DNA of 64,000 nt from sequence record NC_019410.1. One strand, given 5' to 3'. The notes under the pieces are model-generated. The model saw only the letters and a list, made by a program, of their open reading frames with translations. It was not told the DNA's origin and ran no database searches. The number at the start of each line of letters is the position of its first letter. The stretch's first letter is position 1. Position numbers and translations under genes: made by a program. Below are positions 1 to 54,339 of the stretch, in pieces.

Positions 1-3000
1 TACCTGACCGGCAACCCGACCTCGCCCACGCGGGGCGCGCCGACGTTCGGCCGCCGCCAGCCCTATACCGGCACCATGACCTTCGACGCGCGCCCGGCGG
101 GCCGGGCCGGTGGCATGGGCGGCCTGTTCGCCGCCATGGGTTCGGGCGCGGCGACCGCCGCCACCGGAGCCTTCACGGGCCTGCGCAAGGCGCTCAACGT
201 CCTGCCCGGCGTCGCCCTCGGCGCGGCGGTCGCCCTGGCGATCTTCGGCAACAGCATCACCAAGCTGAACGACAAGGCCGTCTCGTACAACAACATCGCC
301 GCCGGAGCCCTGGGCACGGCGGGCGACGAGATCGGCAACGGCATGACCGGGCTGATCAACGGCATCCGGGGTCTTTTCGGCGCCCAGCAGAAGGCCCAGG
401 GCACCGGCGATTGGCTGGTGGACCTCTCTGCCACGCTGATCGTCTTCGGCAAGGCCATCTTCACCCTGGCGACCACGCTCGGTAAAATCCTCGGCACGCT
501 GATGGCCAATGTCATCATCCCGTGGATCGAACTGGGCCAAAAGGTCGCTTCGGGCGACCTGAAGGGCGCGGCGGGCAAGGCCGGCGAGGTCCTGATGGGG
601 CAGATCGGCAAGGGCAATCGCGAGCGCTGGGCCGAACTGGGTAAGGAACTGGGCAAGGACTGGGGCAAGGCCCTGGACTACGCGGGCACGCGCCAGTCGA
701 TCGTCAACGGCGCCCTGAAGTCGGCGGCCGGCGACAGCGCCGCCCAGCAGGGGGCCAACGCCGCCGAGAAGATGACCGAGGCGGCTCTGGCGCAGATGAA
801 GGCCGCCGACCAGCAGGCCCTCGCCGCCGCCGACTTGAAGGACGCCACGGCGAACTTCAAGAAGGACCTGGAGCCGCTCAACTTCAACGACCTCTTCAAG
901 CGCGCCGCCGCCCTGGCCGACGGCAGCTTCGCGCGCACCGCCGCCGCGTCCAAGCCGGGTGGCATGATGGCGCCGCCGGCCGTGGCGACGCAACAGACCG
1001 CCGCCGCCGTCAAGGCGACCATCGCCTCGATGGGCGATCGCGTGTACGCGACGGCCGGGCAGCATCTCGGTCAGACCGAGGCCAAGGACGCCGCGTCCCT
1101 GCAAGCCTACTTCAAGGCCAACGGCGTCACCATCGATCCCAAGAAGCTCTCCTGGTGCGCGGCCTTCGTCAACGCCGTCCTGGCCCAGAACGGGCTCTCG
1201 GGCTCGGGCTCGCTGGCGGCCTCGTCCTTCAAGGACTATGGCGACGAGGTCTCGCGCACCGACGCCCGCAAGGGCGACATCGTCGTCCTCAAGCCCCAGG
1301 CGGCGGGCGCGACCGGTCACGTCGGCTTCCTCGACGGCTTCGACCGCCACGGCAATGTGCGGGTGCTGGGCGGCAACCAGGGCGCGGCCGGCGGCGGCGG
1401 CGTCAACGTCTCGACCTTCGCCTCCAATCAGGTCGTCTCCTTCCGCCGCACGGGCAGCGGCGGGGCCTCCAACTTCCTGGGCGGCGGCATCACCGAGGCC
1501 CAGGGCGAAGAAGGCGGCTCGCGCTACGAGCGCCGGATGAACGCCTTCAAGGCGCTCGGGACGATCACCGGCCAAGCCTCGCCGGCCGCCGACGCCCTGG
1601 CCGACTACCAAGGCAACCTCGAAAAGCTGCGCGACATCATCGTCTCGGAAGAGAAGCTGCTGAAGGACGTCGGGGCCGACGGCCAGTCGTTCTTCAACAA
1701 GACGAACCTGGAAGCCCTGGTCGCCGCTCAGAAGAAGTGGAACCGCTCGATCGTCGAGGCGCTCAACCCGATCGCCAAGGAAGCCCGGACCCTGTCTGAG
1801 GCCAACGACGTCCTGCAATTGCGCGCCAAGGGCCTGTCGCAGGAAGCCGACTGGCAAGAGCGTCTGACCGAACTGCGCAACTCCGGCATCAATGTCGACC
1901 TGATGCAGGATGAGGCCAAGTGGACCCAGTACCTGAACGAGTTGAAGAAGCAGGGCCTGGAGATCGACGTCAAGGCCCTGCAACTGAAGCCGGACGAACT
2001 GCGCTACCAGCAGGGTCGCGCCGAGGCGCTCCAGGCTGAACTCGACCTGACCAAGGCGCTGAACGACGCCAAGCTGGCGGGCATCGCCCGCACCGGCTCC
2101 AGCTACGACCGCACCCTGTCGGGCCTCGTCGCTGGCAAGGGCCGCGACGGCGAGACGCTCGACCAGACCCGCCAGCGTCTGGCGGGTTCGGTTGGCAGCG
2201 ACGGCCGCAACGCGCTGGAGGCCCTGCAAGAGCAGGCCGGCGTGATGGAAGGCTCGCGCATGGCCGACGTCAAGGCCAGCATGCAGTCGCAGCTTGAGAT
2301 CATGCGCGAGAGCGCGCGCCTCAACAACACCCAGCGCGGCATCTACGACGACTACCGCAACATCCTGGGCGAACTGCTGAACAAGCAGGGCGCCTCGCTG
2401 AAGGAACTGCTGGACTCGGCCGACGAGGAGACCAAGCGTCTCGCCCAGTCGTTCGTCCGCGCCAAGGCGGACTTCGAAAACCCGCCCGGCTTCCAGAAGT
2501 GGGCCGACTCCCTGGAGCCGCTGAACAAGCGCCTCCAGGACATCAAGGCCAACTTCCTCGACAACTTCTCCGGCGGCATCACCGATGCGCTGCTGGGCGA
2601 GAAGGTCGACTGGAAGGCGATGCTGCACGACACCTTCAAACAGATGCTGCGCGCCCAGGTCGATGAGGGTCTGAAGAGCCTCACCTACAAGCTGCTCGGC
2701 CAAGGAGGCGACCAGGGCGCGGCCCAAACCCCCGAAGCCCAGGCGCTGGTCTCGGCGGCCGATGTCCAATTGCAGGCCGGCAACAGCCTGCAACAAGCCG
2801 CCGCCAGCCTGATGCAGGCGGCTCAGACCACCGCGACCGCCGGCGCGGGCGGCGGCCTGGGCGTGATGACGGGCGGACCCGCGATGGGCGGCCTCGGCGG
2901 TCTCCTGGGTGGTGGCGGCGGCCTCGGCGCGCTGGCCGGCGTCCTGGGCGGCGGCGACGGCACGGCGACCAACCCGTTCTCGATCGCCGACACCATCCTC

Positions 3001-3783
3001 AAGCCCCTGGTCGTCGACCAGACCGGCGGACCGGGTTTCCAGGCGGCGGGCGCGGCGCTCCAGGGCCTGAACATCACTCCGCCGGGCGGCGGCGGCTTCC
3101 TGTCGGGCCTGGGCTCGATGTTCCAAGGGGGCCTGGGCTCGATGCTGCAAGGCGCTCTGAGCTTCGCCGGCCCGCTGCTGGGCGGCCTGCTGACGGGGGG
3201 CAAGAAGAGCCCCAAGACGCCGGCGAGCTATCGCATGCCGGGCGGCGTCATCGGTCAGGCGAGCACCAACAGCGTCTCGGGTCGCGTGATCGGTCCCAAG
3301 CAGAACCTGATCGGCTCTCTAGCGAACCTGGGCTTCCAGTTGTTCGCGGGCGGCATGGGTGGCGGCGGCGGCCTGATGAGCATGTTCGGCATGGGCGGCG
3401 CTGGCGGCGCGGGAAGCTTCATCGGCTTCAAGGAAGGCGGCCTGACGGGCGCGCCAGTCAACCGTTACACCGTCTCCTCGCTGGGCTCGATGTTCGCCAA
3501 CGCTCCGCACTATGCCGAGGGCACCAGCAACACCAAGCTGGCCAACGGCGGCATGCCGGCGATCGTCCACCCGGACGAGGCGGTGATCCCGCTGTCGCGT
3601 GGCCGCAACGTCCCGGTGGAACTGAAGGGCGCCGGCGGCGGAAGCTCGACCACCGTGGTCTCGCCGATCACCGTCTACGCCAACGACGTCGATAGCTTCC
3701 GCCCGGCCCAGGCGCAGATCGCCCGCAAGCAGAACCGCACCCTGCGCCGCGCGGCCCTGCGCAACGCCTCGATGGTCAACTAG
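1..3783 (+). CDS. Tail tape measure protein (5'-truncated by the window edge) with an internal TIGR02594-like peptidoglycan peptidase domain
   Basis: The frame is open from base 1. The protein is Ala/Gly-rich and helical, contains WCAAFVN...GDIVVL...GHVGF...VLGGNQ, ends in a GTA-type TMP C-terminus (YAEG...AIVHPDEAVIPLSRG) and lies directly upstream of the Dit gene. Confidence 0.9.
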   Translation, partial: YLTGNPTSPTRGAPTFGRRQPYTGTMTFDARPAGRAGGMGGLFAAMGSGAATAATGAFTGLRKALNVLPGVALGAAVALAIFGNSITKLNDKAVSYNNIAAGALGTAGDEIGNGMTGLINGIRGLFGAQQKAQGTGDWLVDLSATLIVFGKAIFTLATTLGKILGTLMANVIIPWIELGQKVASGDLKGAAGKAGEVLMGQIGKGNRERWAELGKELGKDWGKALDYAGTRQSIVNGALKSAAGDSAAQQGANAAEKMTEAALAQMKAADQQALAAADLKDATANFKKDLEPLNFNDLFKRAAALADGSFARTAAASKPGGMMAPPAVATQQTAAAVKATIASMGDRVYATAGQHLGQTEAKDAASLQAYFKANGVTIDPKKLSWCAAFVNAVLAQNGLSGSGSLAASSFKDYGDEVSRTDARKGDIVVLKPQAAGATGHVGFLDGFDRHGNVRVLGGNQGAAGGGGVNVSTFASNQVVSFRRTGSGGASNFLGGGITEAQGEEGGSRYERRMNAFKALGTITGQASPAADALADYQGNLEKLRDIIVSEEKLLKDVGADGQSFFNKTNLEALVAAQKKWNRSIVEALNPIAKEARTLSEANDVLQLRAKGLSQEADWQERLTELRNSGINVDLMQDEAKWTQYLNELKKQGLEIDVKALQLKPDELRYQQGRAEALQAELDLTKALNDAKLAGIARTGSSYDRTLSGLVAGKGRDGETLDQTRQRLAGSVGSDGRNALEALQEQAGVMEGSRMADVKASMQSQLEIMRESARLNNTQRGIYDDYRNILGELLNKQGASLKELLDSADEETKRLAQSFVRAKADFENPPGFQKWADSLEPLNKRLQDIKANFLDNFSGGITDALLGEKVDWKAMLHDTFKQMLRAQVDEGLKSLTYKLLGQGGDQGAAQTPEAQALVSAADVQLQAGNSLQQAAASLMQAAQTTATAGAGGGLGVMTGGPAMGGLGGLLGGGGGLGALAGVLGGGDGTATNPFSIADTILKPLVVDQTGGPGFQAAGAALQGLNITPPGGGGFLSGLGSMFQGGLGSMLQGALSFAGPLLGGLLTGGKKSPKTPASYRMPGGVIGQASTNSVSGRVIGPKQNLIGSLANLGFQLFAGGMGGGGGLMSMFGMGGAGGAGSFIGFKEGGLTGAPVNRYTVSSLGSMFANAPHYAEGTSNTKLANGGMPAIVHPDEAVIPLSRGRNVPVELKGAGGGSSTTVVSPITVYANDVDSFRPAQAQIARKQNRTLRRAALRNASMVN

Positions 3784-3798
3784 CTGTCACCCACGACA

Positions 3799-3814
3799 GT
3801 CGTGAATCTTGACG
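3799..3814 (+). promoter_or_regulatory. Recurrent phage promoter/operator motif GTCGTGAATCTTGACG (contains -35 TTGAC)
   Basis: Intergenic copy before the Dit gene; ATGGTTAA follows at 3853-3860. Confidence 0.65.
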
Positions 3815-3866
3815 TTCCTGGATGATCGTGGCATCCAGGGACACCTCCTTTCATGGTTAATGCCCG

Positions 3867-4517
3867 ATGCCGAGCTTCCACGACGTCCTGTTCCCCGAGA
3901 CTATCAGCTACGGCTCGTCAGGCGGGCCGAAGTTCAAGACCACGATCTTCCAGGCCGACAGCGGCTTTGAGCAGCGCAACAAGGACTGGAGCGACATCCG
4001 CTGCGAGTACGATGTCGCCCAGTCGATCCGCTCGACCGAGGACATGGACGAGCTTCGCGCCTTCTTCATGGCCCGCAACGGTCGCGCCCATGGCTTCCGC
4101 TACAAGGACTGGGGCGACTTCCGCCTCAAGAACCAGTTGATCGGCGTCGGCGACGGCCTCACCAAGGTCTTCCAGATCGTCAAGACCTATACCAGCGTCG
4201 CCCACGACGGCACCGAGTACACCTACACCCGCACGATCCGCAAGCCCAAGTGGGACTCGATCGCCGGCGTCAAGGTCGGCGCCGTGGTTCAGGTCGCCCC
4301 GACCAACTACGAGGTCGACTATTCGACCGGCCTGATGACCTTCGTCACCGCGCCGCCGGCCGACGCCCCGGTCACCATTGGCCTGGGCGAGTTCCACGTC
4401 CCCGTCCGCTTCGACACCGACTTCATGGACGTCACCCAGGAGTTCTGGATGCGCGAGACGTGGCCCAACATCCCGATCGTCGAAATCCGTGACTGGCAAG
4501 AGGCCCTGACGCCGTGA
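3867..4517 (+). CDS. Distal tail protein (DUF2460/TIGR02217, GTA-like)
   Basis: FP..ISYGSSGGP.F.T, FF.AR.GRAHGFR.KDW.D and F.VPVRFDTD signatures; located after the TMP. Confidence 0.85.
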   Translation: MPSFHDVLFPETISYGSSGGPKFKTTIFQADSGFEQRNKDWSDIRCEYDVAQSIRSTEDMDELRAFFMARNGRAHGFRYKDWGDFRLKNQLIGVGDGLTKVFQIVKTYTSVAHDGTEYTYTRTIRKPKWDSIAGVKVGAVVQVAPTNYEVDYSTGLMTFVTAPPADAPVTIGLGEFHVPVRFDTDFMDVTQEFWMRETWPNIPIVEIRDWQEALTP

Positions 4518-6139
4518 AATCCGTCCCCGAAGACCTGATGGCGCACCTCCAGGAGGAGGTGACCACGCTCGCGACGTGCATCACGATCGTGCGCCAGGAC
4601 GGCAAGGCGTTCTTCATGACCGACCACGATCGGCCGATCAAGTTCGAGAACCAGACCTACGTCCCCTACGACTCCTACCAGCGCACGTCGATCCTGATGT
4701 CGTCGGAACTGGAAGTCGACACCGCCGACATCACCGCCTTCCTGACCTCGAACGGGGTGACGCGCGACGACGTGGCCTCGGGCCTGTTCGACTATGCCGC
4801 GATCAAGGTCCAGTTGCTGAACTACGAGCGGCCCGAGGACGGGGCGATCCTGCTCCGCAAGGGCACGTTCGGCGAAGTGACCATGAACCAGGACGAGACC
4901 TTCTCGGCCGAAATCCGGGGCATGACCCAGGTCCTGACCTACCGGGTCGGGGAGACCTACGCGCCCGAGTGCCGGGCCGACCTCGGCGACCGCCGCTGCA
5001 AGATCGGACTGATGCCGGAGGAATGGCAGGCCAACAAATACTACGGCCTCGACGCCTGCGTGCTGGGCGAACTCGTCGCCCCTACGTCGTTCGTCAATCC
5101 CGTGGTCGTCAACGGCAACTTCGAGGACGGCGCCCTCAACGCCGTCGTCACCGCGCCGACGGGCTGGGTGGCCTATGGCGATCCGACCAGCCGCTGGGTC
5201 TACAAGCACGACTGGTACAATCTGTCTCGCCCGCAGGTCGGCAATCAGTTCATCGCCGCCACCCGCACCTCGATCTCCGACAAGCAGGAAATCGCCGGCA
5301 TCTACCAGGACATCAACCTCGTCTCCGCCGGCGTGCCCGCCGCCGCGATCGACGGCGGCCTCTGCCGCGTGCGCTACAAGTCCTTCGCCGCCTGCCTCAA
5401 CAACCGCGCCCAATCGCGCGAGCGCCTGACCTGCATCAAGGCCGACGGCTCGGTGGAGACGATCTGGGACACCGGTGAGATCAAGTACCCCGAGGACCGC
5501 TGGATCGCGGTCAACGCCGACGACGTCCTGATCCCGGCCGGCACGCGCGTCCTGCGCATCGACCTGTGGTCCAAGAAGCGCAGCGTCCACGAGGAGGGCG
5601 CGGCCTATGACGGGATCAGCCTGTCGATCAACCTGCCGGCGGGCACGGCCGGCAACGCCAACGTCTATGGCGGGGTGATGTTCAAGTGCATCCAGGCGGG
5701 GATCAGCGGCGGCACCGAGCCGGCCTGGACCAACGAACTGGGGGCCACCTATACCGACGGCACGGTCATCTGGCAGTGCGTGTCCAACTACAAGAAGGTG
5801 GGCACGGTCGCCACGGTCGCCTCCAACAAGTCGTTCACCTCGACCGACATCACCGAGCCGGCCGGTCACTATGACGGCGGCGTGCTCTACTGGGAAACCG
5901 GCCGCAACGCCGGACGCGCCCAGGAGATCAAGACCTGGGCCGCCAACCTCTTCACGCTCTTCCAGCGCACCTACTATCCGATCACGGCGGGCGACCGCTT
6001 CGTGGTCTATCCCGGCTGCGACAAGCGCCGCGCCACCTGCGCCGACAAGTTCCACAACATCCACAACTTCCGCGCCGAGCCCGACGTGCCCGGTCAGGAC
6101 ATCTACTACCGCACGCCCAACGCTCCGGAGCAGGAATGA
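4514..6139 (+). CDS. Baseplate hub protein (DUF2163/BR0599-like) with an inserted carbohydrate-binding-like module
   Basis: N-terminal TTLATC..I.R.DG....TDHDR, central CRA.LGD.RC and C-terminal GD.F..YPGCDK....C..KF.N..NFR.EP.VPG. Confidence 0.85.
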   Translation: MKSVPEDLMAHLQEEVTTLATCITIVRQDGKAFFMTDHDRPIKFENQTYVPYDSYQRTSILMSSELEVDTADITAFLTSNGVTRDDVASGLFDYAAIKVQLLNYERPEDGAILLRKGTFGEVTMNQDETFSAEIRGMTQVLTYRVGETYAPECRADLGDRRCKIGLMPEEWQANKYYGLDACVLGELVAPTSFVNPVVVNGNFEDGALNAVVTAPTGWVAYGDPTSRWVYKHDWYNLSRPQVGNQFIAATRTSISDKQEIAGIYQDINLVSAGVPAAAIDGGLCRVRYKSFAACLNNRAQSRERLTCIKADGSVETIWDTGEIKYPEDRWIAVNADDVLIPAGTRVLRIDLWSKKRSVHEEGAAYDGISLSINLPAGTAGNANVYGGVMFKCIQAGISGGTEPAWTNELGATYTDGTVIWQCVSNYKKVGTVATVASNKSFTSTDITEPAGHYDGGVLYWETGRNAGRAQEIKTWAANLFTLFQRTYYPITAGDRFVVYPGCDKRRATCADKFHNIHNFRAEPDVPGQDIYYRTPNAPEQE

Positions 6140-39116: not shown

Positions 39117-39807
39117 AGAGAAGCTCCGGTTTGGCGCTGACCGGCTTGGACCAATCCCAGACGTACCAAGCGTAGGCGAAGCGCGGGGCGCCCTTGGTGC
39201 CGGCGATCCAGCGGGGGCGGTGACGAAGGGTGACCTTCGCGGTGAAAGCGGGGTGATCGAACAGGTCCGCGCGCGAGCGCGCCGCGTCCCATTCGTGGCG
39301 GCAGAGGAAGGCCACGAGGCCCTGGTCGGCCTCCATCAGGTCCAGCGCGTGGCGCGCGGCGCGCTCGGCGTCCTTGCCGTAGGGCGGGTTGGTGATGATC
39401 GCGTCCGGACGCGGCGGCAACGGCGTGCTCTTGCGCTCCTCGCCCTTCTCGTCGACAACCGTCTCGGGCCGGACCTTCAGCGCGCCCAGGCGGTCGAGGT
39501 CGGCCGGCGTCAGCTTGAAGAAGTCCTCGACCGCGTCGACCTCGAAGCCCTCGTAGCGGTGGATGTCCGTGGCGAGGACTTCCTGCACGAAGGGCTTGAG
39601 CGGCGTGGCGATGGCGCCGTTGCCGGCGAAGGGCTCCCAGGCGAAGAACGGGGCGAAATCATCGCCCAGGGCCTCGATCAGGGCGTCGAAGGCCGGCCGA
39701 GGAGTCGGGTAAAAGTCCAGCGGGGTCCTGGCATATCCGGAGGCGCCCAGCATGGAGGGGTCTTTGCGACCAGCATCGGAGAGAGACATGGTCGTGAGGG
39801 ATGTCAT
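39106..39807 (-). CDS. Amino (N6-adenine/N4-cytosine) DNA methyltransferase-like protein
   Basis: DFYPTP, WEPFAGNG (SAM binding) and TNPPY motifs. Confidence 0.8.
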   Translation of the reverse strand: MTSLTTMSLSDAGRKDPSMLGASGYARTPLDFYPTPRPAFDALIEALGDDFAPFFAWEPFAGNGAIATPLKPFVQEVLATDIHRYEGFEVDAVEDFFKLTPADLDRLGALKVRPETVVDEKGEERKSTPLPPRPDAIITNPPYGKDAERAARHALDLMEADQGLVAFLCRHEWDAARSRADLFDHPAFTAKVTLRHRPRWIAGTKGAPRFAYAWYVWDWSKPVSAKPELLYAG

Positions 39808-39820
39808 GGTTAACGAAGGG

Positions 39821-39867
39821 TGTCAAGATTCACGACATTGACTGTCGTGACGCAGCACGTTAATCAG
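39821..39867. promoter_or_regulatory. Divergent promoter region: recurrent motif (minus, 39821-39837) and TTGACT (39838-43)...GTTAATC (plus)
   Basis: The motif abuts a plus-strand -35 element directed at the 630-nt RNA. Confidence 0.55.
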
Positions 39868-39869
39868 GA

Positions 39870-40498
39870 GGCAACGGGCCGTCCTTCTGCATTAGCCCCG
39901 CCGCCGCGCCTTCCAGGCGGCACGGGCCGGGACGGTGGTTGGTGACGAGCAGGCCGAGGCAGCGGCGGGCGAGTCGAAGGAGAACCCGGCGAGCGGCGGA
40001 AGGCGTCGTTGACGCCCTCGGACTCGACAAGCACGTGGTGATGCCGGAAATCACCGCGATCGCGCGGACGTCTGGACGTTGCTAGGCGTAAGGCAGGCCT
40101 GCCGAGAAGTGGAAACGGCCGGGGCGGGCGGGACTTGATCTCGTCCGCCTTTCCGCCTAAGCTTCCCTCATTGCAGGCGCAGCACCGCCCTTCGCTAACG
40201 GCCCCGAGGGGTACGCAAGGGCTAGAAGCCTTGCCTGGGACAGGACTGCCTCTGATCCAGGAACGCCCTGGGCCGCGTAGCGCCCATGACGCGAACGCCG
40301 GCCGAGAATGGGCGACTAGGCGTGACGGCGGCCAGAGGCCGCAGCGACATTCCAAGCTCGATAGAGCGATCGGCGGGCCGGGGCGAAAGCCCTGTTTCGA
40401 GAGCCAGGGCAACCCGTCATAGGTCCTGGTCGGGCGACGAGGCAGCAAGTCCCGCGAACGGAGCCTCTGAGGTGGCGTCACCAAGATGCAGCAGACGC
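39870..40498 (+). ncRNA. Unassigned large ornate ncRNA candidate (~630 nt)
   Basis: Nested end-to-end helices (39887-93/40485-91; 39939-47/40476-84), many GNRA hairpins, its own promoter and terminator, and no credible ORF. Confidence 0.65.
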
Positions 40499-40531
40499 AA
40501 AAAGGCCCCGATCGCGAGATCGGGGCCTTTT
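40499..40531. terminator. Bidirectional rho-independent terminator
   Basis: AAAAGGCCCCGATC-gcga-GATCGGGGCCTTTT. Confidence 0.9.
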
Positions 40532-40536
40532 CATGT

Positions 40537-40625
40537 TGGAGCTTCGGGAGGGACTCGAACCCTCATAGGTGTTCCCACCAGCAGAGATTTGCAATCCCGC
40601 GCCTAACCTCTCAGTCCACCGAAGC
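40537..40625 (-). tRNA. tRNA-Cys(GCA) with a long (class II-like) variable arm
   Basis: Acceptor GCTTCGG/CCGAAGC, U73, encoded CCA, anticodon loop TT-GCA-AA, variable arm GGTG-GGAA-CACC, T arm GAGGG-TTCGAGT-CCCTC. Confidence 0.85.
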
Positions 40626-40809
40626 ACAAAAGGACCTCGACGCCCGAAGGCCCGAGGTCCGATCCGTAACCAGGGGAGGGCCGTAGCTGTCCCCTGACCC
40701 TGAACGACAGGTGGCGGGCTTGGTCGTCATCCCGTCAGGCTCGCGGCGCCGCTCGCCTGAACCGCCGATATGCCACGAGGGCAGTGATCCGCAGGTCCCC
40801 ACAAATAGC

Positions 40810-40844
40810 AAAAAGGCCACGATCCGCGAGGACCGTGGCCTTTT
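40810..40844 (-). terminator. Rho-independent terminator closing the GOLLD-like RNA
   Basis: AAAAGGCCACG...CGTGGCCTTTTT on the minus strand. Confidence 0.85.
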
Positions 40845-40845
40845 C

Positions 40846-41722
40846 GTTTTCCGATGGGCTGAGACTACACCCATCAGCAATCCCGCTTCGAGGATTATTC
40901 CCCAGGTGCGACCCCAGGTATTCCCTCGACGTCCACCAGACCCCTTGCGGTAGTCCAGTCCGAGATCATCGCCGCCGTTCTTGCGCACCCCGAAGGGATT
41001 GCGGGTCTGGCGTTTGACCCATCATGGCGAACTACTCGACAGTTCCTTCCCCGCTGGGCTTGCGACCCACTCACCGGCGCTAACCGGCTGACGAAGCTCT
41101 TCCTATCGACACCTCGCGGGCTTGCGACCCTTGAGATGACTCCGTTACCCGAAGGCCGGAGCATTTGGCGACTTACGTCCGCCACTGGACCAGTCTTTGC
41201 GTTTTTCATCGAAGCGGGGATTGAACCCGCGACCGACAGCTTAAGAGGCTGTTGCACTACCACTGTGCTATTCGCAAACCCACCAAGACGTGCTGGTCCA
41301 GTTGTTCCCAGAGCTTTTGACCCCGGAAATGCAACACGCCTCATATCTTTCGCCTTGCGGGCTACTCGACTGCTCTTCAGGACTCCGTCTCCCCCAACCT
41401 TTCGGCCAGGATGCCCAGCACCCCTCGAACTGAAGCAAAGCTCTTCACCGCGAAGTGTCGAACCCTGCAACCCAAACGGTTATCCGTACTCCCTAGACAC
41501 GCTTGCACGGGATAGTCCGCTTGCGACGGACTGGCGGTTAAAGCCTCGGAGTTACCCCGGCCCCGCCTTGTCTCCCACGGTCTTCAGGTCTATCCCCTTT
41601 TGCAAGAGGCGGCCAGCTTCCCAGCCCGGACCCGTCGGCTTCCTCTGTCCTCTTGCGAGGTCGGGCGGCCTATGGGAGACCGTCCCTGTCACCCCGTCGC
41701 CGGGGCTTTCGTCAGAAGCGAC
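40846..41722 (-). ncRNA. GOLLD-like giant ornate RNA (~870 nt)
   Basis: Size, tRNA association, an embedded tRNA, GAGUA E-loop motifs, repeated GCAA tetraloops, and 3' motifs GAGCUUCGUCAGC and GGUGUAGUCUCA recalled from GOLLD; has its own promoter and terminator. Ends are approximate. Confidence 0.78.
41206..41277 (-). tRNA. tRNA-Lys(CTT)-like element embedded in the GOLLD-like RNA; acceptor stem broken, no CCA
   Basis: D arm GCAC-AGTGGTA-GTGC, anticodon arm ACAGC-CT CTT AA-GCTGT, T arm GCGGG-TTCAATC-CCCGC; acceptor TTGCGAA/TTCGATG has only 4 Watson-Crick pairs. Confidence 0.8.
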
Positions 41723-41728
41723 GATGAC

Positions 41729-41757
41729 GTTCTAGCGACAGCCCACGTCGTCGTCAA
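41729..41757 (-). promoter_or_regulatory. Caulobacter sigma73-type promoter TTGACG-N15-GCTAGAAC for the GOLLD-like RNA
   Basis: Matches the recalled Caulobacter housekeeping consensus TTGACGS...GCTANAWC. Confidence 0.75.
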
Positions 41758-41813
41758 CGACTTTTTCCGTCTCGATGTCGAATTTTTTCGACAGTCGTGG
41801 ATGACGACAGTGC

Positions 41814-41841
41814 TTGACATTCTCGTAAGCCCATGCTAGGT
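41814..41841 (+). promoter_or_regulatory. Promoter TTGACA-N15-GCTAGG for the tmRNA
   Basis: Divergent from the GOLLD promoter. Confidence 0.65.
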
Positions 41842-41844
41842 GTC

Positions 41845-42225
41845 GGAAATCGTTGTAATTCGGACAACGGAACTGGCGGCAAGACAGGGGTGCGAATCCC
41901 CTCGCCTCCACCATCGACGCCCGGCGCTGGGAGTACGCGACTCCTGGGCAGGGAGTGTTACCCTGGCGGGCTGCGGCCCGAGCCAAAGGTAGCCGGGCGT
42001 CGTTGATGGGGGCGACTAGCTTTCGATTGGCGCTCGGGACTGAAAGACGCAACGGTGGGTGACCTCCACATCGGCTTGCCGGTGATCGGGTCAGGCAACA
42101 GTAAATGTCGCCGACAATGACAACGACGTCGTGGCTTTCGCCTCGGCTCGTGAAGCCATCGCCGCCTAATAAGCGGTAGAGGAGCCCGCCGGGAGCTTGG
42201 CAACAGAATCCCGGCAACCCCCTTT
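41845..42225 (+). ncRNA. ssrA: Circularly permuted (two-piece, alphaproteobacterial-type) tmRNA; tag ADNDNDVVAFASAREAIAA
   Basis: The acceptor piece ends T arm-CGCCTCC-A-CCA at 41913. The coding piece starts GGGGGCG at 42008, giving a G3:U70 Ala identity pair. The tag ORF at 42110-42169 ends in AA followed by TAATAA. Confidence 0.92.
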
Positions 42226-42350
42226 CGCAGGCGGGAACACCAACAGGCGATCTGTCGGGCGACCGATTTCCGATCCGTGTTCCCGTCTTCGAAAGGTGGT
42301 CAGGCCTACCCTCTTGGTGTGCTATCCAAGGGTCTGGCCACTTTACAGAA

Positions 42351-42429
42351 CGCGGGGTAGAGGAGTCCGGTTGTCCTCGTCTGGCTCATAACCAGGAGAT
42401 CGTGGGTTCAAATCCCACTCCCGCTCCCA
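42351..42429 (+). tRNA. tRNA-fMet(CAT)-like
   Basis: CGCGGGG 5' end with a C1:U72 mismatch, CTCATAA loop, TTCAAAT T loop and encoded CCA. Confidence 0.88.
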
Positions 42430-42510
42430 ATGCGAACGCCGGCTGTTGAGAACGACGGCGTGACAAGCTCGGAGAGAACGAGCACTCCAGTCCGGGGTAT
42501 GAGGCCGGAC

Positions 42511-42707
42511 TAGCGGACGCCGTAGCGATTGCAGGCGTGACACCCGGAGATAGCGGGACCGGCTTTCCGAGCCGCATGCTCGGCGCGTAAGACCGCAGGC
42601 CTCGGCCATCGGGCAGTGTCAGGGGATGAGGCTAGTCCTCGGCTAACCACCTAGCGGTGAAGCTAGGGCATGCGGTTCGGAAAGCCGGGTTCGCGGTTCG
42701 TCCGCTA
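42511..42707 (+). ncRNA. Unassigned structured RNA with a 27-bp stem and multibranch loop
   Basis: 42553-79 pairs with 42668-94 (26 of 27 positions, 3 GU); outer helix 42511-19/42699-707. Confidence 0.55.
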
Positions 42708-42708
42708 C

Positions 42709-42790
42709 GAGATGGAGATGTCGCCGGTTCGAGTCCGGCAGGTCCCCCAAAAGGAGGCCTTAGCTCAGTCGGTAGAGCGCTCCTATCCCA
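42709..42790 (+). ncRNA. YrlA-like Y RNA / circularly permuted tRNA mimic
   Basis: The order is stem 5' strand, T arm (TTCGAGT), acceptor-like hairpin closed by CAAAA, D arm (AGTCGGTA), stem 3' strand. Confidence 0.7.
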
Positions 42791-42795
42791 CCTTT

Positions 42796-42880
42796 GGTAC
42801 GGTGGCTCGACAGGTAAGGCATCGGCCTCATAAGCCGAGGGTTCGTCCCAATCCTGGTTCAAATCCAGGTCGTACCTCCA
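42796..42880 (+). tRNA. tRNA with CAT anticodon, long variable arm and U73 (Met/Ile2 identity uncertain)
   Basis: Acceptor GGTACGG/TCGTACC, anticodon arm TCGGC-CTCATAA-GCCGA, variable arm GGG-TTCGT-CCC, encoded CCA. Confidence 0.85.
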
Positions 42881-42954
42881 AATCGACGCTTGACCCCAGG
42901 CCGCAGGCTGCTAAGCTTCCCCGGTCGGGATCGTCCCGCGTCCTTTCCAAGGTC

Positions 42955-42985
42955 AAGCCCCCGGAGCTTCGCTTCGGGGGCTTTT
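42955..42985 (+). terminator. Rho-independent terminator ending the tmRNA/tRNA unit
   Basis: AAGCCCCCGGAG-cttcg-CTTCGGGGGCTTTT. Confidence 0.85.
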
Positions 42986-43338
42986 CAGTTCTTGACCACC
43001 CGCAGGCGCCGGGCCTCGATGGCGCGCTCCTCCGCCGCCACGCGCGAGACGTCTTGCAGGTGCGCCTTGGCGATCAGGTCGGGCGCGCCCACGGCCCGGA
43101 AGGGCACCTTGACGGAGAGGTCGACATAGCGCCGCAAGAGAGGCTCGAATTCCAGACCCCGCGCCTGGGCGATCCGCGACAATGCGCCGGCGACGATCGC
43201 CACGACCAGGACGTTGGTCGGGGTCTCCTTGGTCAGGGTCCAGATGCCCGGTATCGATTGTCCAGGATGGAGTTCCTGCCGCGACACGTCATCGGCGGCG
43301 GCGCGGAAGAGGTTCTCGTAAGGGACGTTTTCGAGCAT
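42985..43338 (-). CDS. Hypothetical protein
   Basis: 117-aa ORF converging on the terminator. Confidence 0.55.
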   Translation of the reverse strand: MLENVPYENLFRAAADDVSRQELHPGQSIPGIWTLTKETPTNVLVVAIVAGALSRIAQARGLEFEPLLRRYVDLSVKVPFRAVGAPDLIAKAHLQDVSRVAAEERAIEARRLRVVKN

Positions 43339-43417
43339 GCGACAACGATAGCGATCTTTTGCCGCCTGTCTACCCTCTACTCTTGATAGTAGTAAAGCCC
43401 TGATTTCAACACAAGCG

Positions 43418-51753: not shown

Positions 51754-51845
51754 GGCAAACTCCGAAAGGCAGGCTTGAGTGAATGTGTTGCCGATCCTTC
51801 TAGCGAGGCGTTCTGGCTCTGTCAACACACTCCAGCCTGCCGGGA

Positions 51846-54264: not shown

Positions 54265-54281
54265 TGTCATGAATCTTGACA
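54265..54281 (+). promoter_or_regulatory. Recurrent motif TGTCATGAATCTTGACA upstream of the primase gene
   Basis: Intergenic copy. Confidence 0.65.
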
Positions 54282-54339
54282 CCTGTCGGGATTGGAGGCT
54301 AGATGGCTCCCGCCTTTCACCCCCGTCCCGACAGGCTTC

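Follow-up and report, generated by a model that had tools for sequence, protein, structure and literature searches.

A putative stable-RNA island in Caulobacter phage CcrKarma and its phiCbK-like relatives

The locus considered here is a region of about 3.1 kb (positions 39860-42990) within a 64,000-nucleotide (nt) stretch of sequence record NC_019410.1, hereafter the window. It belongs with the known phage islands of tRNAs and ornate RNAs, and what is new in it are two RNAs, called unit 1 and RNA X. GOLLD and ROOL, for which cage structures have been solved, rank with the largest RNAs of bacteria and phages; their function, to our knowledge, is still not known. GOLLD occurs in horizontally transferred tRNA arrays and forms a 14-mer cage, sometimes with a tRNA in its linker, this nanocage assembly being known only for env-38 (Kretsch et al., bioRxiv 10.1101/2024.12.08.627333). 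The YrlA family of Y RNAs has been reported in phages beside Ro60, and its authors flagged the junctions of tandem tRNAs as a source of false positives (PMC4201824). Phage tRNAs can also neutralise tRNA-cleaving defences, as do T5 tRNA-Lys against PARIS and tRNAs against a retron (PMC11464382, PMC11555353). For the phage studied here, the genome paper reported that Rfam gave no functional RNA beyond tRNAs.

An island of structured RNAs

Caulobacter phage CcrKarma (JX100811), referred to below as Karma, matches the window with 100% identity, and window positions equal record positions minus 62000. The island is flanked on the left by a T5 A1-like gene and a DNA methylase gene and on the right by two small hypothetical genes followed by an SNF2-type helicase gene. 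Rfam 15 covariance models were applied at their gathering scores and ARAGORN was used for tRNAs and transfer-messenger RNA (tmRNA), with weak Rfam matches considered down to E<=5 over positions 39500-43400. This revealed matches above the gathering score to GOLLD (RF02032), the permuted tmRNA (tmRNA_permuted, RF04321) and, four times, tRNA. The ARAGORN result agreed, with a tRNA-Cys, a tRNA-Lys(CTT) within GOLLD, a permuted tmRNA and two tRNA-Met genes, while the weak matches were trivial, such as PhotoRC-I at 17 bits and the terminator-like ncS011. The statement that this genome holds only tRNAs thus no longer holds. A tmRNA feature at this locus is lacking in the GenBank records examined, that of Brevundimonas phage Bajun excepted, and newer annotations of related phages list one.

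An original prediction made from the sequence had described 39860-42990 as an all-RNA locus without a credible coding sequence (CDS), organised as three promoter-to-terminator units and holding GOLLD, tmRNA, a tRNA mimic, atypical tRNAs and two unassigned RNAs. This inventory is essentially correct, the proposed Rfam and ARAGORN searches having recovered GOLLD, the permuted tmRNA and the tRNAs at 39860-42990, and terminator-like hairpins together with promoter-like sites of the form TTGAC...GCTAG agree with the limits of the three units. The sole CDS annotated in the region, gp130, fails comparative coding tests. We are close to certain that the island is a protein-free set of the structured RNAs described below, with no credible protein gene. 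The prediction had also supposed that the individual members were probably already known, which is so for GOLLD, the tmRNA and the tRNAs but not for unit 1 and RNA X.

Unit 1, RNA X and their shared motif

Positions 39870-40496, plus strand: unit-1 RNA, about 630 nt plus terminator, structured, without an Rfam family (covariation, non-coding variation)
Positions 40282-40345, plus strand: motif M, UGAsGCGAACGCCGGCCGAGA..GAC.AGGCGUGAC, then a hairpin with an AGAG loop
Positions 42430-42706, plus strand: RNA X, about 275 nt, without an Rfam family, between the two tRNA-Met genes (alifold covariation, motif M)

GenBank places the hypothetical CDS gp130 on the minus strand (39864-40445) inside unit 1, and its phiCbK counterpart is gp128, both falling in the protein family PHROG 13461. 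If this annotation were right, unit 1 would be a minus-strand protein gene, and an open reading frame (ORF) of 193-206 codons that matches PHROG 13461 at E=6e-102 does exist; this match is circular, however, as the family was built from the same annotated ORFs. The codon positions of variable columns were compared among five phages that are 91-96% identical in this region, with the neighbouring methylase and A1-like genes as controls. Variable columns in unit 1 were spread 17/25/25 over the three codon positions and accompanied by three 1-nt indels, versus 8/5/33 for the methylase and 5/3/39 for the A1-like gene, both gap-free. The gp130/gp128 ORF therefore shows neither the third-position bias nor the frame-preserving indels of coding evolution. 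It has no Pfam match, varies in length from 137 to 206 codons, and was left uncalled by the annotators of RBC57, BL10 and RBC63.

An RNAalifold consensus of nine unit-1 sequences from three lineages, evaluated against 500 shuffles and slid controls, contains 150 pairs in 26 helices with 94.8% of cells paired. Forty pairs are changed on both sides, a number reached by 0 of 500 shuffles and compared with 5-16 in the slid controls, and the fold is better on the plus strand (-172) than on the minus strand (-138). The alignment consensus was preferred, since minimum-energy folding cannot be relied on for a GC-rich RNA of 670 nt: when the single-sequence minimum-energy fold of Karma was mapped onto the Rogue-type unit 1, it gave 22 compensatory versus 93 broken pairs, barely above slid controls, and was set aside. 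Taken together, comparison among relatives shows that unit 1 is a structured, non-coding RNA, and the gp130 annotation is most likely an RNA gene. With 40 compensatory pairs on the opposite strand, the protein-gene explanation is already largely refuted, and we regard it as highly improbable.

Like GOLLD and ROOL as a kind, unit 1 is long (630 nt), multi-helical, furnished with GNRA-type loops, phage-encoded, located beside tRNA genes and contained in its own transcription unit. It differs from both in that it resembles neither of them in sequence or structure, matches no Rfam model at E<=5, and carries its own motif M, which is also found in RNA X. The original prediction had counted two giant ornate RNAs in the island; this stands insofar as unit 1 is large and backed by covariation, but unit 1 is neither a second GOLLD nor a ROOL.

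RNA X folds as two domains, a 5' domain with two M-like elements and a 3' domain consisting of a 29-base-pair (bp) helix around a conserved hairpin. Of the 67 pairs in its alifold consensus, in which 97.7% of cells are paired, eight show changes on both sides, a number reached by 0 of 500 shuffles and compared with 0-1 in slid controls. Covariation across related phages, which had been proposed as a check, is thus present above shuffled levels in both unit 1 and RNA X. The body of RNA X has no Rfam covariance-model match at E<=5, and its 3' domain is still recognisable in relatives with genomes of 317-322 kb.

Motif M is the segment of unit 1 that blastn still detects in distant relatives, namely Colossus, PW and the Brevundimonas phages. 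Alignment of 17 copies shows no change in helix 1 and covariation in the hairpin, and the motif always lies on the plus, that is the RNA, strand. RNA X opens with motif M followed by a second, variant copy. Upstream of tRNA-Cys in Colossus, PW and Kabachok there are 3-4 copies with a spacing of about 225-290 nt, and PW has one extra copy about 870 nt downstream. Strict patterns of the motif matched only this phage family (isolates, one IMG/VR contig and one metagenome fragment), and a strict pattern scan of one genome per species across 185,579 bacterial and archaeal species found none. Scans of genome collections and metagenomes gave 9 matches, of which one (L148) is a true relative; the other eight look like chance, being without a flanking motif, hairpin or tRNA genes (one tRNA-Ser excepted). 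A loose pattern, GAACGCCG-N8-36-GGCGTGAC, gave more than 100 single matches in IMG/VR that are probably due to chance, and a stricter pattern returned the phage family only. Judged from these alignments, unit 1 and RNA X are conserved structured RNAs that have motif M in common and represent families absent from Rfam 15.

Conservation could instead act on the DNA itself, as at a replication origin, packaging site or regulatory region, rather than on RNA products. The island does sit between early genes and the replication module, and two of its terminators are bidirectional. However, the consensus folds are strand-specific, with 147 G-U cells in unit 1 and the annotated RNA strand always folding better, the orientation of promoters and terminators fits the RNA strands, and half of the island consists of bona fide RNA genes, so that this explanation seems barely conceivable to us.

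In the IMG/VR contig L140 (IMGVR_UViG_3300033068_001629, positions 900-5035), about 4 kb with at least two M motifs lie upstream of tRNA-Cys, and ORFs of at least 100 codons overlap on both strands in these 4 kb. The RNA portion of the island may extend much further in this contig. ORFs have likewise been annotated across the island in other relatives, including RBC8_126c (L008:3315-3728), BL64 (H23/H55), CcrPW_gp171 (L011:3232-3825), CcrColossus_gp163 (L010:4961-5170), BL57_145 and BL57_146c (L003:3312-3440 and 4957-5163) and one at L009:4331-4456. The name "DNA transfer protein" attached to some of them was apparently transferred by similarity. These ORFs overlap homologues of unit 1, GOLLD or RNA X and are probably not genes.

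GOLLD, the two-piece tmRNA, tRNAs and a tRNA mimic

Positions 40856-41342, minus strand: GOLLD RNA, conserved 3' domain plus linker (RF02032, 171.2 bits versus a gathering score of 150, model positions 1-416 of 416)
Positions 41343-41722, minus strand: GOLLD 5' (variable) domain (alifold on 4 sequences: 107 pairs, 23 compensatory)
Positions 41205-41278, minus strand: tRNA-like domain in the GOLLD linker (tRNA-Lys(CTT) by ARAGORN in Karma)
Positions 41242-41246, minus strand: five hypervariable anticodon-loop bases, beyond which five phages are identical over 111 aligned nt

The minus-strand element matches GOLLD above threshold over the full model and has a variable 5' domain ahead of it, which folds better on the minus than on the plus strand. 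From promoter to terminator the unit measures about 910 nt, in line with the length of at least about 800 nt, including a structured 5' domain, that is typical of the family, and it has the family's usual setting, lying in a phage among tRNA genes with a tRNA in the linker. RF02032 also scores 165-170 bits in phiCbK, Ccr10, Magneto, RBC57 and BL57, and 104 bits in Brevundimonas phage Bajun. Karma differs from described GOLLD RNAs in its host clade, that of Alphaproteobacteria phages; a literature search found no report of GOLLD in Caulobacter or Alphaproteobacteria phages. It differs further in that its embedded tRNA has a degenerate acceptor stem and that the anticodon loop is the sole variable segment among relatives. 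The embedded tRNA also lacks CCA and is aligned by the Rfam tRNA model at positions 4-67 only, and thus does not form a canonical cloverleaf.

Karma and Magneto have the loop sequence CUCUUAA, phiCbK and Ccr10 have CGUCCUA, and BL57 has CAUCCUA. The five variable bases of the loop account for 5 of the 10 differences between Karma and phiCbK in the 867-nt GOLLD transcript, and if differences were evenly spread, our own arithmetic gives a chance of about 1e-6 that 5 of 10 would cluster in a single 5-nt window of the 867 nt. G33 or A33, together with U37, is found in two of the three loop variants, and these we take not to decode normally. The five-base change does not covary with other differences in GOLLD, unit 1 or RNA X. 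On present sequence comparisons, this loop-only variation is the strongest hint of a factor that would recognise anticodon loops, and it would fit an arms race.

Positions 41846-42260, plus strand: permuted tmRNA (RF04321 at 41851-42169, 71.9 bits versus 47; ARAGORN "Permuted" at 41821-42260)

The acceptor piece of the tmRNA ends in CCA at 41913 and the coding piece begins at 42008. As read from the sequence, the 5' GGGGGCG of the acceptor pairs with CGCCUCC, followed by A and CCA, providing G3-U70 and A73, the marks of alanine identity. The tag ORF (42107-42172) encodes VADNDNDVVAFASAREAIAA and is followed by two stop codons. Karma resembles the two-piece tmRNA of Alphaproteobacteria and phage tmRNAs in its permuted order, acceptor CCA, G3-U70, A73 and a tag ending in AA plus stops, and the record of Brevundimonas phage Bajun lists this gene as a tmRNA. 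In contrast to the alphaproteobacterial tmRNA, its tag is longer and phage-specific (ADNDNDVVAFASAREAIAA). Tags differ between genera (..VMEQRLAA, ..FAVREAIAA, ..TSVKLAA), and in every lineage with an ARAGORN-reported tag they end in AA plus stop, as expected of a hydrophobic degron. The tmRNA tag of the 317-322-kb relatives L153 and L154 is VNAANDNDVVVSTMTSVKLAA.

Positions 40537-40625, minus strand: tRNA-Cys(GCA), 89 nt, class-II-like (ARAGORN; Rfam tRNA 33.8 bits)
Positions 42351-42429, plus strand: first tRNA-Met(CAT), 79 nt, initiator-like (Rfam, ARAGORN)
Positions 42796-42880, plus strand: second tRNA-Met(CAT), 85 nt, class-II-like (Rfam, ARAGORN)

All three free-standing tRNAs form canonical cloverleaves with a 7-bp acceptor stem and 3' CCA, and across seven lineages compensatory changes have left their anticodons, loops and encoded CCA in place. 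They are atypical, as had been predicted. The tRNA-Cys and second tRNA-Met combine a 3-bp D stem, a long variable arm, U73 and encoded CCA, and so depart from the class I architecture expected for Cys and Met acceptors, and the first tRNA-Met has a 1-72 mismatch, an enlarged D loop and encoded CCA. The 3' half of the first tRNA-Met (42385-42429, 45 nt) shares 91% identity with Synechococcus phage S-PM2 in a segment overlapping a tRNA-Met annotation, a similarity that probably reflects tRNA conservation and not exchange.

Positions 42715-42782, plus strand: YrlA-like permuted tRNA mimic (RF02553, 29.7 bits versus a gathering score of 69, model positions 23-85 only)

The original prediction had named a Y-like RNA and described YrlA RNAs as tied to Ro60/RtcB systems. 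A tRNA-like core with T arm, acceptor-like hairpin and D arm in the YrlA order is indeed present with high posterior probabilities, and it shares the permuted arms and conserved loop sequences described for YrlA (PMC4201824). It differs from that family in scoring below threshold, in lacking the Ro60-binding helix and an adjoining Ro60 gene, and in occupying a slot of a tRNA operon that varies between phages. The Ro60-binding stem, at model positions 1-22 and 86-114, was left unaligned; by eye the flanks form a stem of only about 7 bp, and the GNCGAA motif was not seen. The match was also considered as the junction of two tandem tRNAs and rejected as such, as the acceptor-like strands pair across a 5-nt loop and there are no flanking tRNA halves. 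From its sequence, the element appears to resemble the tRNA-mimic half of a Y RNA, and we do not place it in the YrlA family. A second weak YrlA-like match (27.1 bits, positions 23-85) lies in Kabachok (L013:1446-1516) between a helix-turn-helix gene and gp540, and permuted tRNA mimics may recur in this phage subfamily.

These features bear on the proposal that the island is a Ro60/Y-RNA surveillance module, in which, on the pattern of Deinococcus and Salmonella, the YrlA-like element would tether a Ro60-like protein and an exonuclease to damaged RNAs. The order of the arms and the occurrence of YrlA in phages next to Ro60 speak for it. The sub-threshold score, the unmatched Ro60-binding stem and the missing GNCGAA motif speak against it, as do the lack of a TROVE (Ro60) domain match in the five genes flanking the island and the absence of the element from Rogue-type phages, BL57, Magneto and Swift. 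The link to Ro60 or RtcB is not supported, and we consider such a module very unlikely.

The three units are delimited by the following signals.

Positions 39838-39866, plus strand: promoter-like site of unit 1, TTGACT-N16-GTTAATC in Karma (read from sequence and alignment)
Positions 40497-40531, both strands: bidirectional intrinsic terminator ending unit 1 (plus) and the tRNA-Cys transcript (minus) (scan, GenBank "terminator" feature, sequence)
Positions 40626-40808, minus strand: structured leader upstream of tRNA-Cys, with a terminator-like hairpin at 40632-40653; its 3' part is kept in Rogue-type phages
Positions 40809-40846, both strands: strong bidirectional terminator at the GOLLD 3' end, a 17-pair stem followed by a U tract
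Positions 41732-41757, minus strand: promoter-like site of the GOLLD unit, TTGACG-N14-GCTAG
Positions 41814-41839, plus strand: promoter-like site of the tmRNA unit, TTGACA-N15-GCTAG
Positions 42881-42985, plus strand: 3' trailer with a CUUGACC...GGUCAAG stem and an intrinsic terminator at 42957-42985 (sequence, terminator scan)

The Caulobacter-type pattern TTGAC-N14-18-GCTAG has 4 matches in the 64-kb window versus 0.2 expected, and a scan for intrinsic-terminator-like hairpins found 9 versus 2.9 expected. The standard scan for Escherichia coli promoters gave no site. Two of the matches (41732-41757 on the minus strand and 41814-41839 on the plus strand) form a divergent promoter-like pair preceding GOLLD and the tmRNA. 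From these promoter-like sites and terminators, host RNA polymerase would be expected to transcribe the three units into polycistronic precursors, which host RNases (P, Z, III and E) would then cut into mature RNAs. The other two exact matches lie beyond the island (51800-51825 on the minus strand and 54276-54302 on the plus strand) and may mark other units transcribed by the host polymerase. At unit 1, the promoter-like site of phiCbK, Ccr10, Magneto and Swift is TTGACT-N15-GCTAGAC; Karma departs from these relatives in the second promoter element (GTTAATC versus GCTAGAC) and in the first ~100 nt of the RNA, the remainder of unit 1 being nearly identical, and this 5'-end difference could reflect altered expression or recombination. 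In the spacer between the tmRNA and the first tRNA-Met (42261-42350), a long hairpin is apparent by eye (GGUGGUCAGGCC...GGUCUGGCCACU), which could be a processing signal.

Synteny, modularity and possible roles of the island

Synteny across phiCbK-like phages, which had been proposed as a further check, revealed a conserved order of RNAs in which single modules have been gained or lost: unit-1-type RNA or RNAs, tRNA-Cys, (GOLLD), tmRNA, tRNA-Met, RNA X, (slot) and tRNA-Met, with GOLLD and the slot variable. The succession of A1-like gene, methylase, RNAs, hypothetical genes and helicase is kept in Shapirovirus, Poindextervirus, Colossusvirus and Brevundimonas phage Bajun; Kabachok and contig L140 have the same RNA order, and for these two the evidence covers only the helicase side or the order of the RNA genes. 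GOLLD is present in Shapirovirus and BL57, sub-threshold in Bajun and absent from Rogue-type and Colossus-type phages. Between RNA X and the second tRNA-Met, Karma, phiCbK, Ccr10 and RBC57 carry the YrlA-like element, and Magneto and Swift an unrelated insert; nothing fills this slot in Rogue-type phages and BL57. In L153 (13984-15330) and L154 (13969-15313), the order on the RNA strand is tmRNA, tRNA-Met, an X-like spacer that retains only the X 3' domain, tRNA-Met and tRNA-Cys, and all three tRNAs are 77 nt long.

Taken as a whole, the preferred explanation, in which a stable-RNA island conserved among phiCbK-like (Dolichocephalovirinae) phages has the roles proposed below, seems to us somewhat more likely than not; this judgement blends near certainty about the protein-free set of RNAs with the lower weight given to its role. 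That its main selected role is translation upkeep together with evasion of tRNA-directed host factors is a tentative proposal, to which we give a little less than even weight. The core of tmRNA, initiator-like tRNA-Met, tRNA-Cys and second tRNA-Met would sustain initiation, elongation and ribosome rescue during host shutdown, the phage tmRNA adding its own degradation tag. By homology, GOLLD would form a multimeric cage with one tRNA-like arm per subunit, and the accessory RNAs (GOLLD, the YrlA-like mimic, unit 1 and RNA X) might bind or decoy host factors that recognise tRNA shapes or anticodon loops. The accessory RNAs are interpreted in this way because GOLLD is a cage with linker tRNAs and because phage tRNAs defeat tRNA-cleaving defences, but a decoy role of unit 1 and RNA X is pure conjecture. 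A ribotoxin-defence module, the translation-protection idea of the original prediction, can likewise be put forward as a hypothesis. Like anti-defence phage tRNAs, the embedded domain of GOLLD is a tRNA-shaped phage RNA with the anticodon loop as the feature under putative selection; unlike them, its variable loop is fixed inside a larger RNA, and two of its variants look non-decoding.

Several observations weigh against this proposal. GOLLD and the YrlA-like element are dispensable in whole genera, and no Ro60, RtcB or other partner gene is found among the genes flanking the island. The long variable arms of the tRNAs are absent in the 317-322-kb relatives L153 and L154, where the genes measure 77 nt, and these arms are therefore accessory rather than essential features. 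The covariation is based on about 3-4 independent lineages, so that fewer events underlie it than the cell counts imply. By raw folding energy, the island RNAs cannot be told apart from neighbouring genes in this 65% GC genome, and stability (energy per nucleotide) was not used as evidence. Finally, we know of no nuclease in Caulobacter that would be the target of a decoy.

A simpler explanation is a plain codon-supply island, in which the tRNAs and tmRNA top up translation and GOLLD, unit 1, RNA X and the YrlA-like element are neutral or selfish mobile passengers without a role in infection. Codon supplementation was proposed for the phiCbK tRNAs by Gill et al., and the presence or absence of GOLLD and the filling of the YrlA-like slot between genera, together with the occurrence of GOLLD in mobile tRNA arrays, would be in keeping with passengers. 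However, unit 1 and RNA X hold their position with compensatory changes across genera that are only ~68% identical there, motif M is nearly invariant in 17 copies, variation confined to five anticodon-loop bases of an otherwise identical RNA is not neutral drift, and the island tRNAs are atypical and not copies of abundant host isoacceptors. We consider this explanation rather doubtful.

At the other extreme, the island could be an RNA-only counter-defence arsenal, composed of GOLLD decoys or sensors, a class of M-motif RNAs and re-shaped tRNAs. GOLLD cages would then show many fast-evolving anticodon loops and serve, multivalently, to decoy or sense host nucleases or modifiers directed at anticodons; unit 1 and RNA X would make up a third class of large phage RNAs beside GOLLD and ROOL, which might self-assemble or sequester a host translation or RNA-processing factor; and the tRNA-Cys and tRNA-Met with long variable arms would have been re-shaped to escape host tRNA-targeting enzymes. 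We hold this combination as a whole to be unlikely.

Returning to the reading of a conserved stable-RNA island, the comparison corrects the record for PHROG 13461 (gp130/gp128, named "DNA transfer protein" in certain genomes), where a mistaken annotation has found its way into a protein-family database. It also puts a GOLLD RNA in phiCbK and related phages, whose host, Caulobacter crescentus, is genetically tractable. Among these relatives there is natural variation in the presence of GOLLD, in the filling of the YrlA-like slot and in the Lys-type versus Gly-type loop, and the functions of these RNAs are therefore directly testable.

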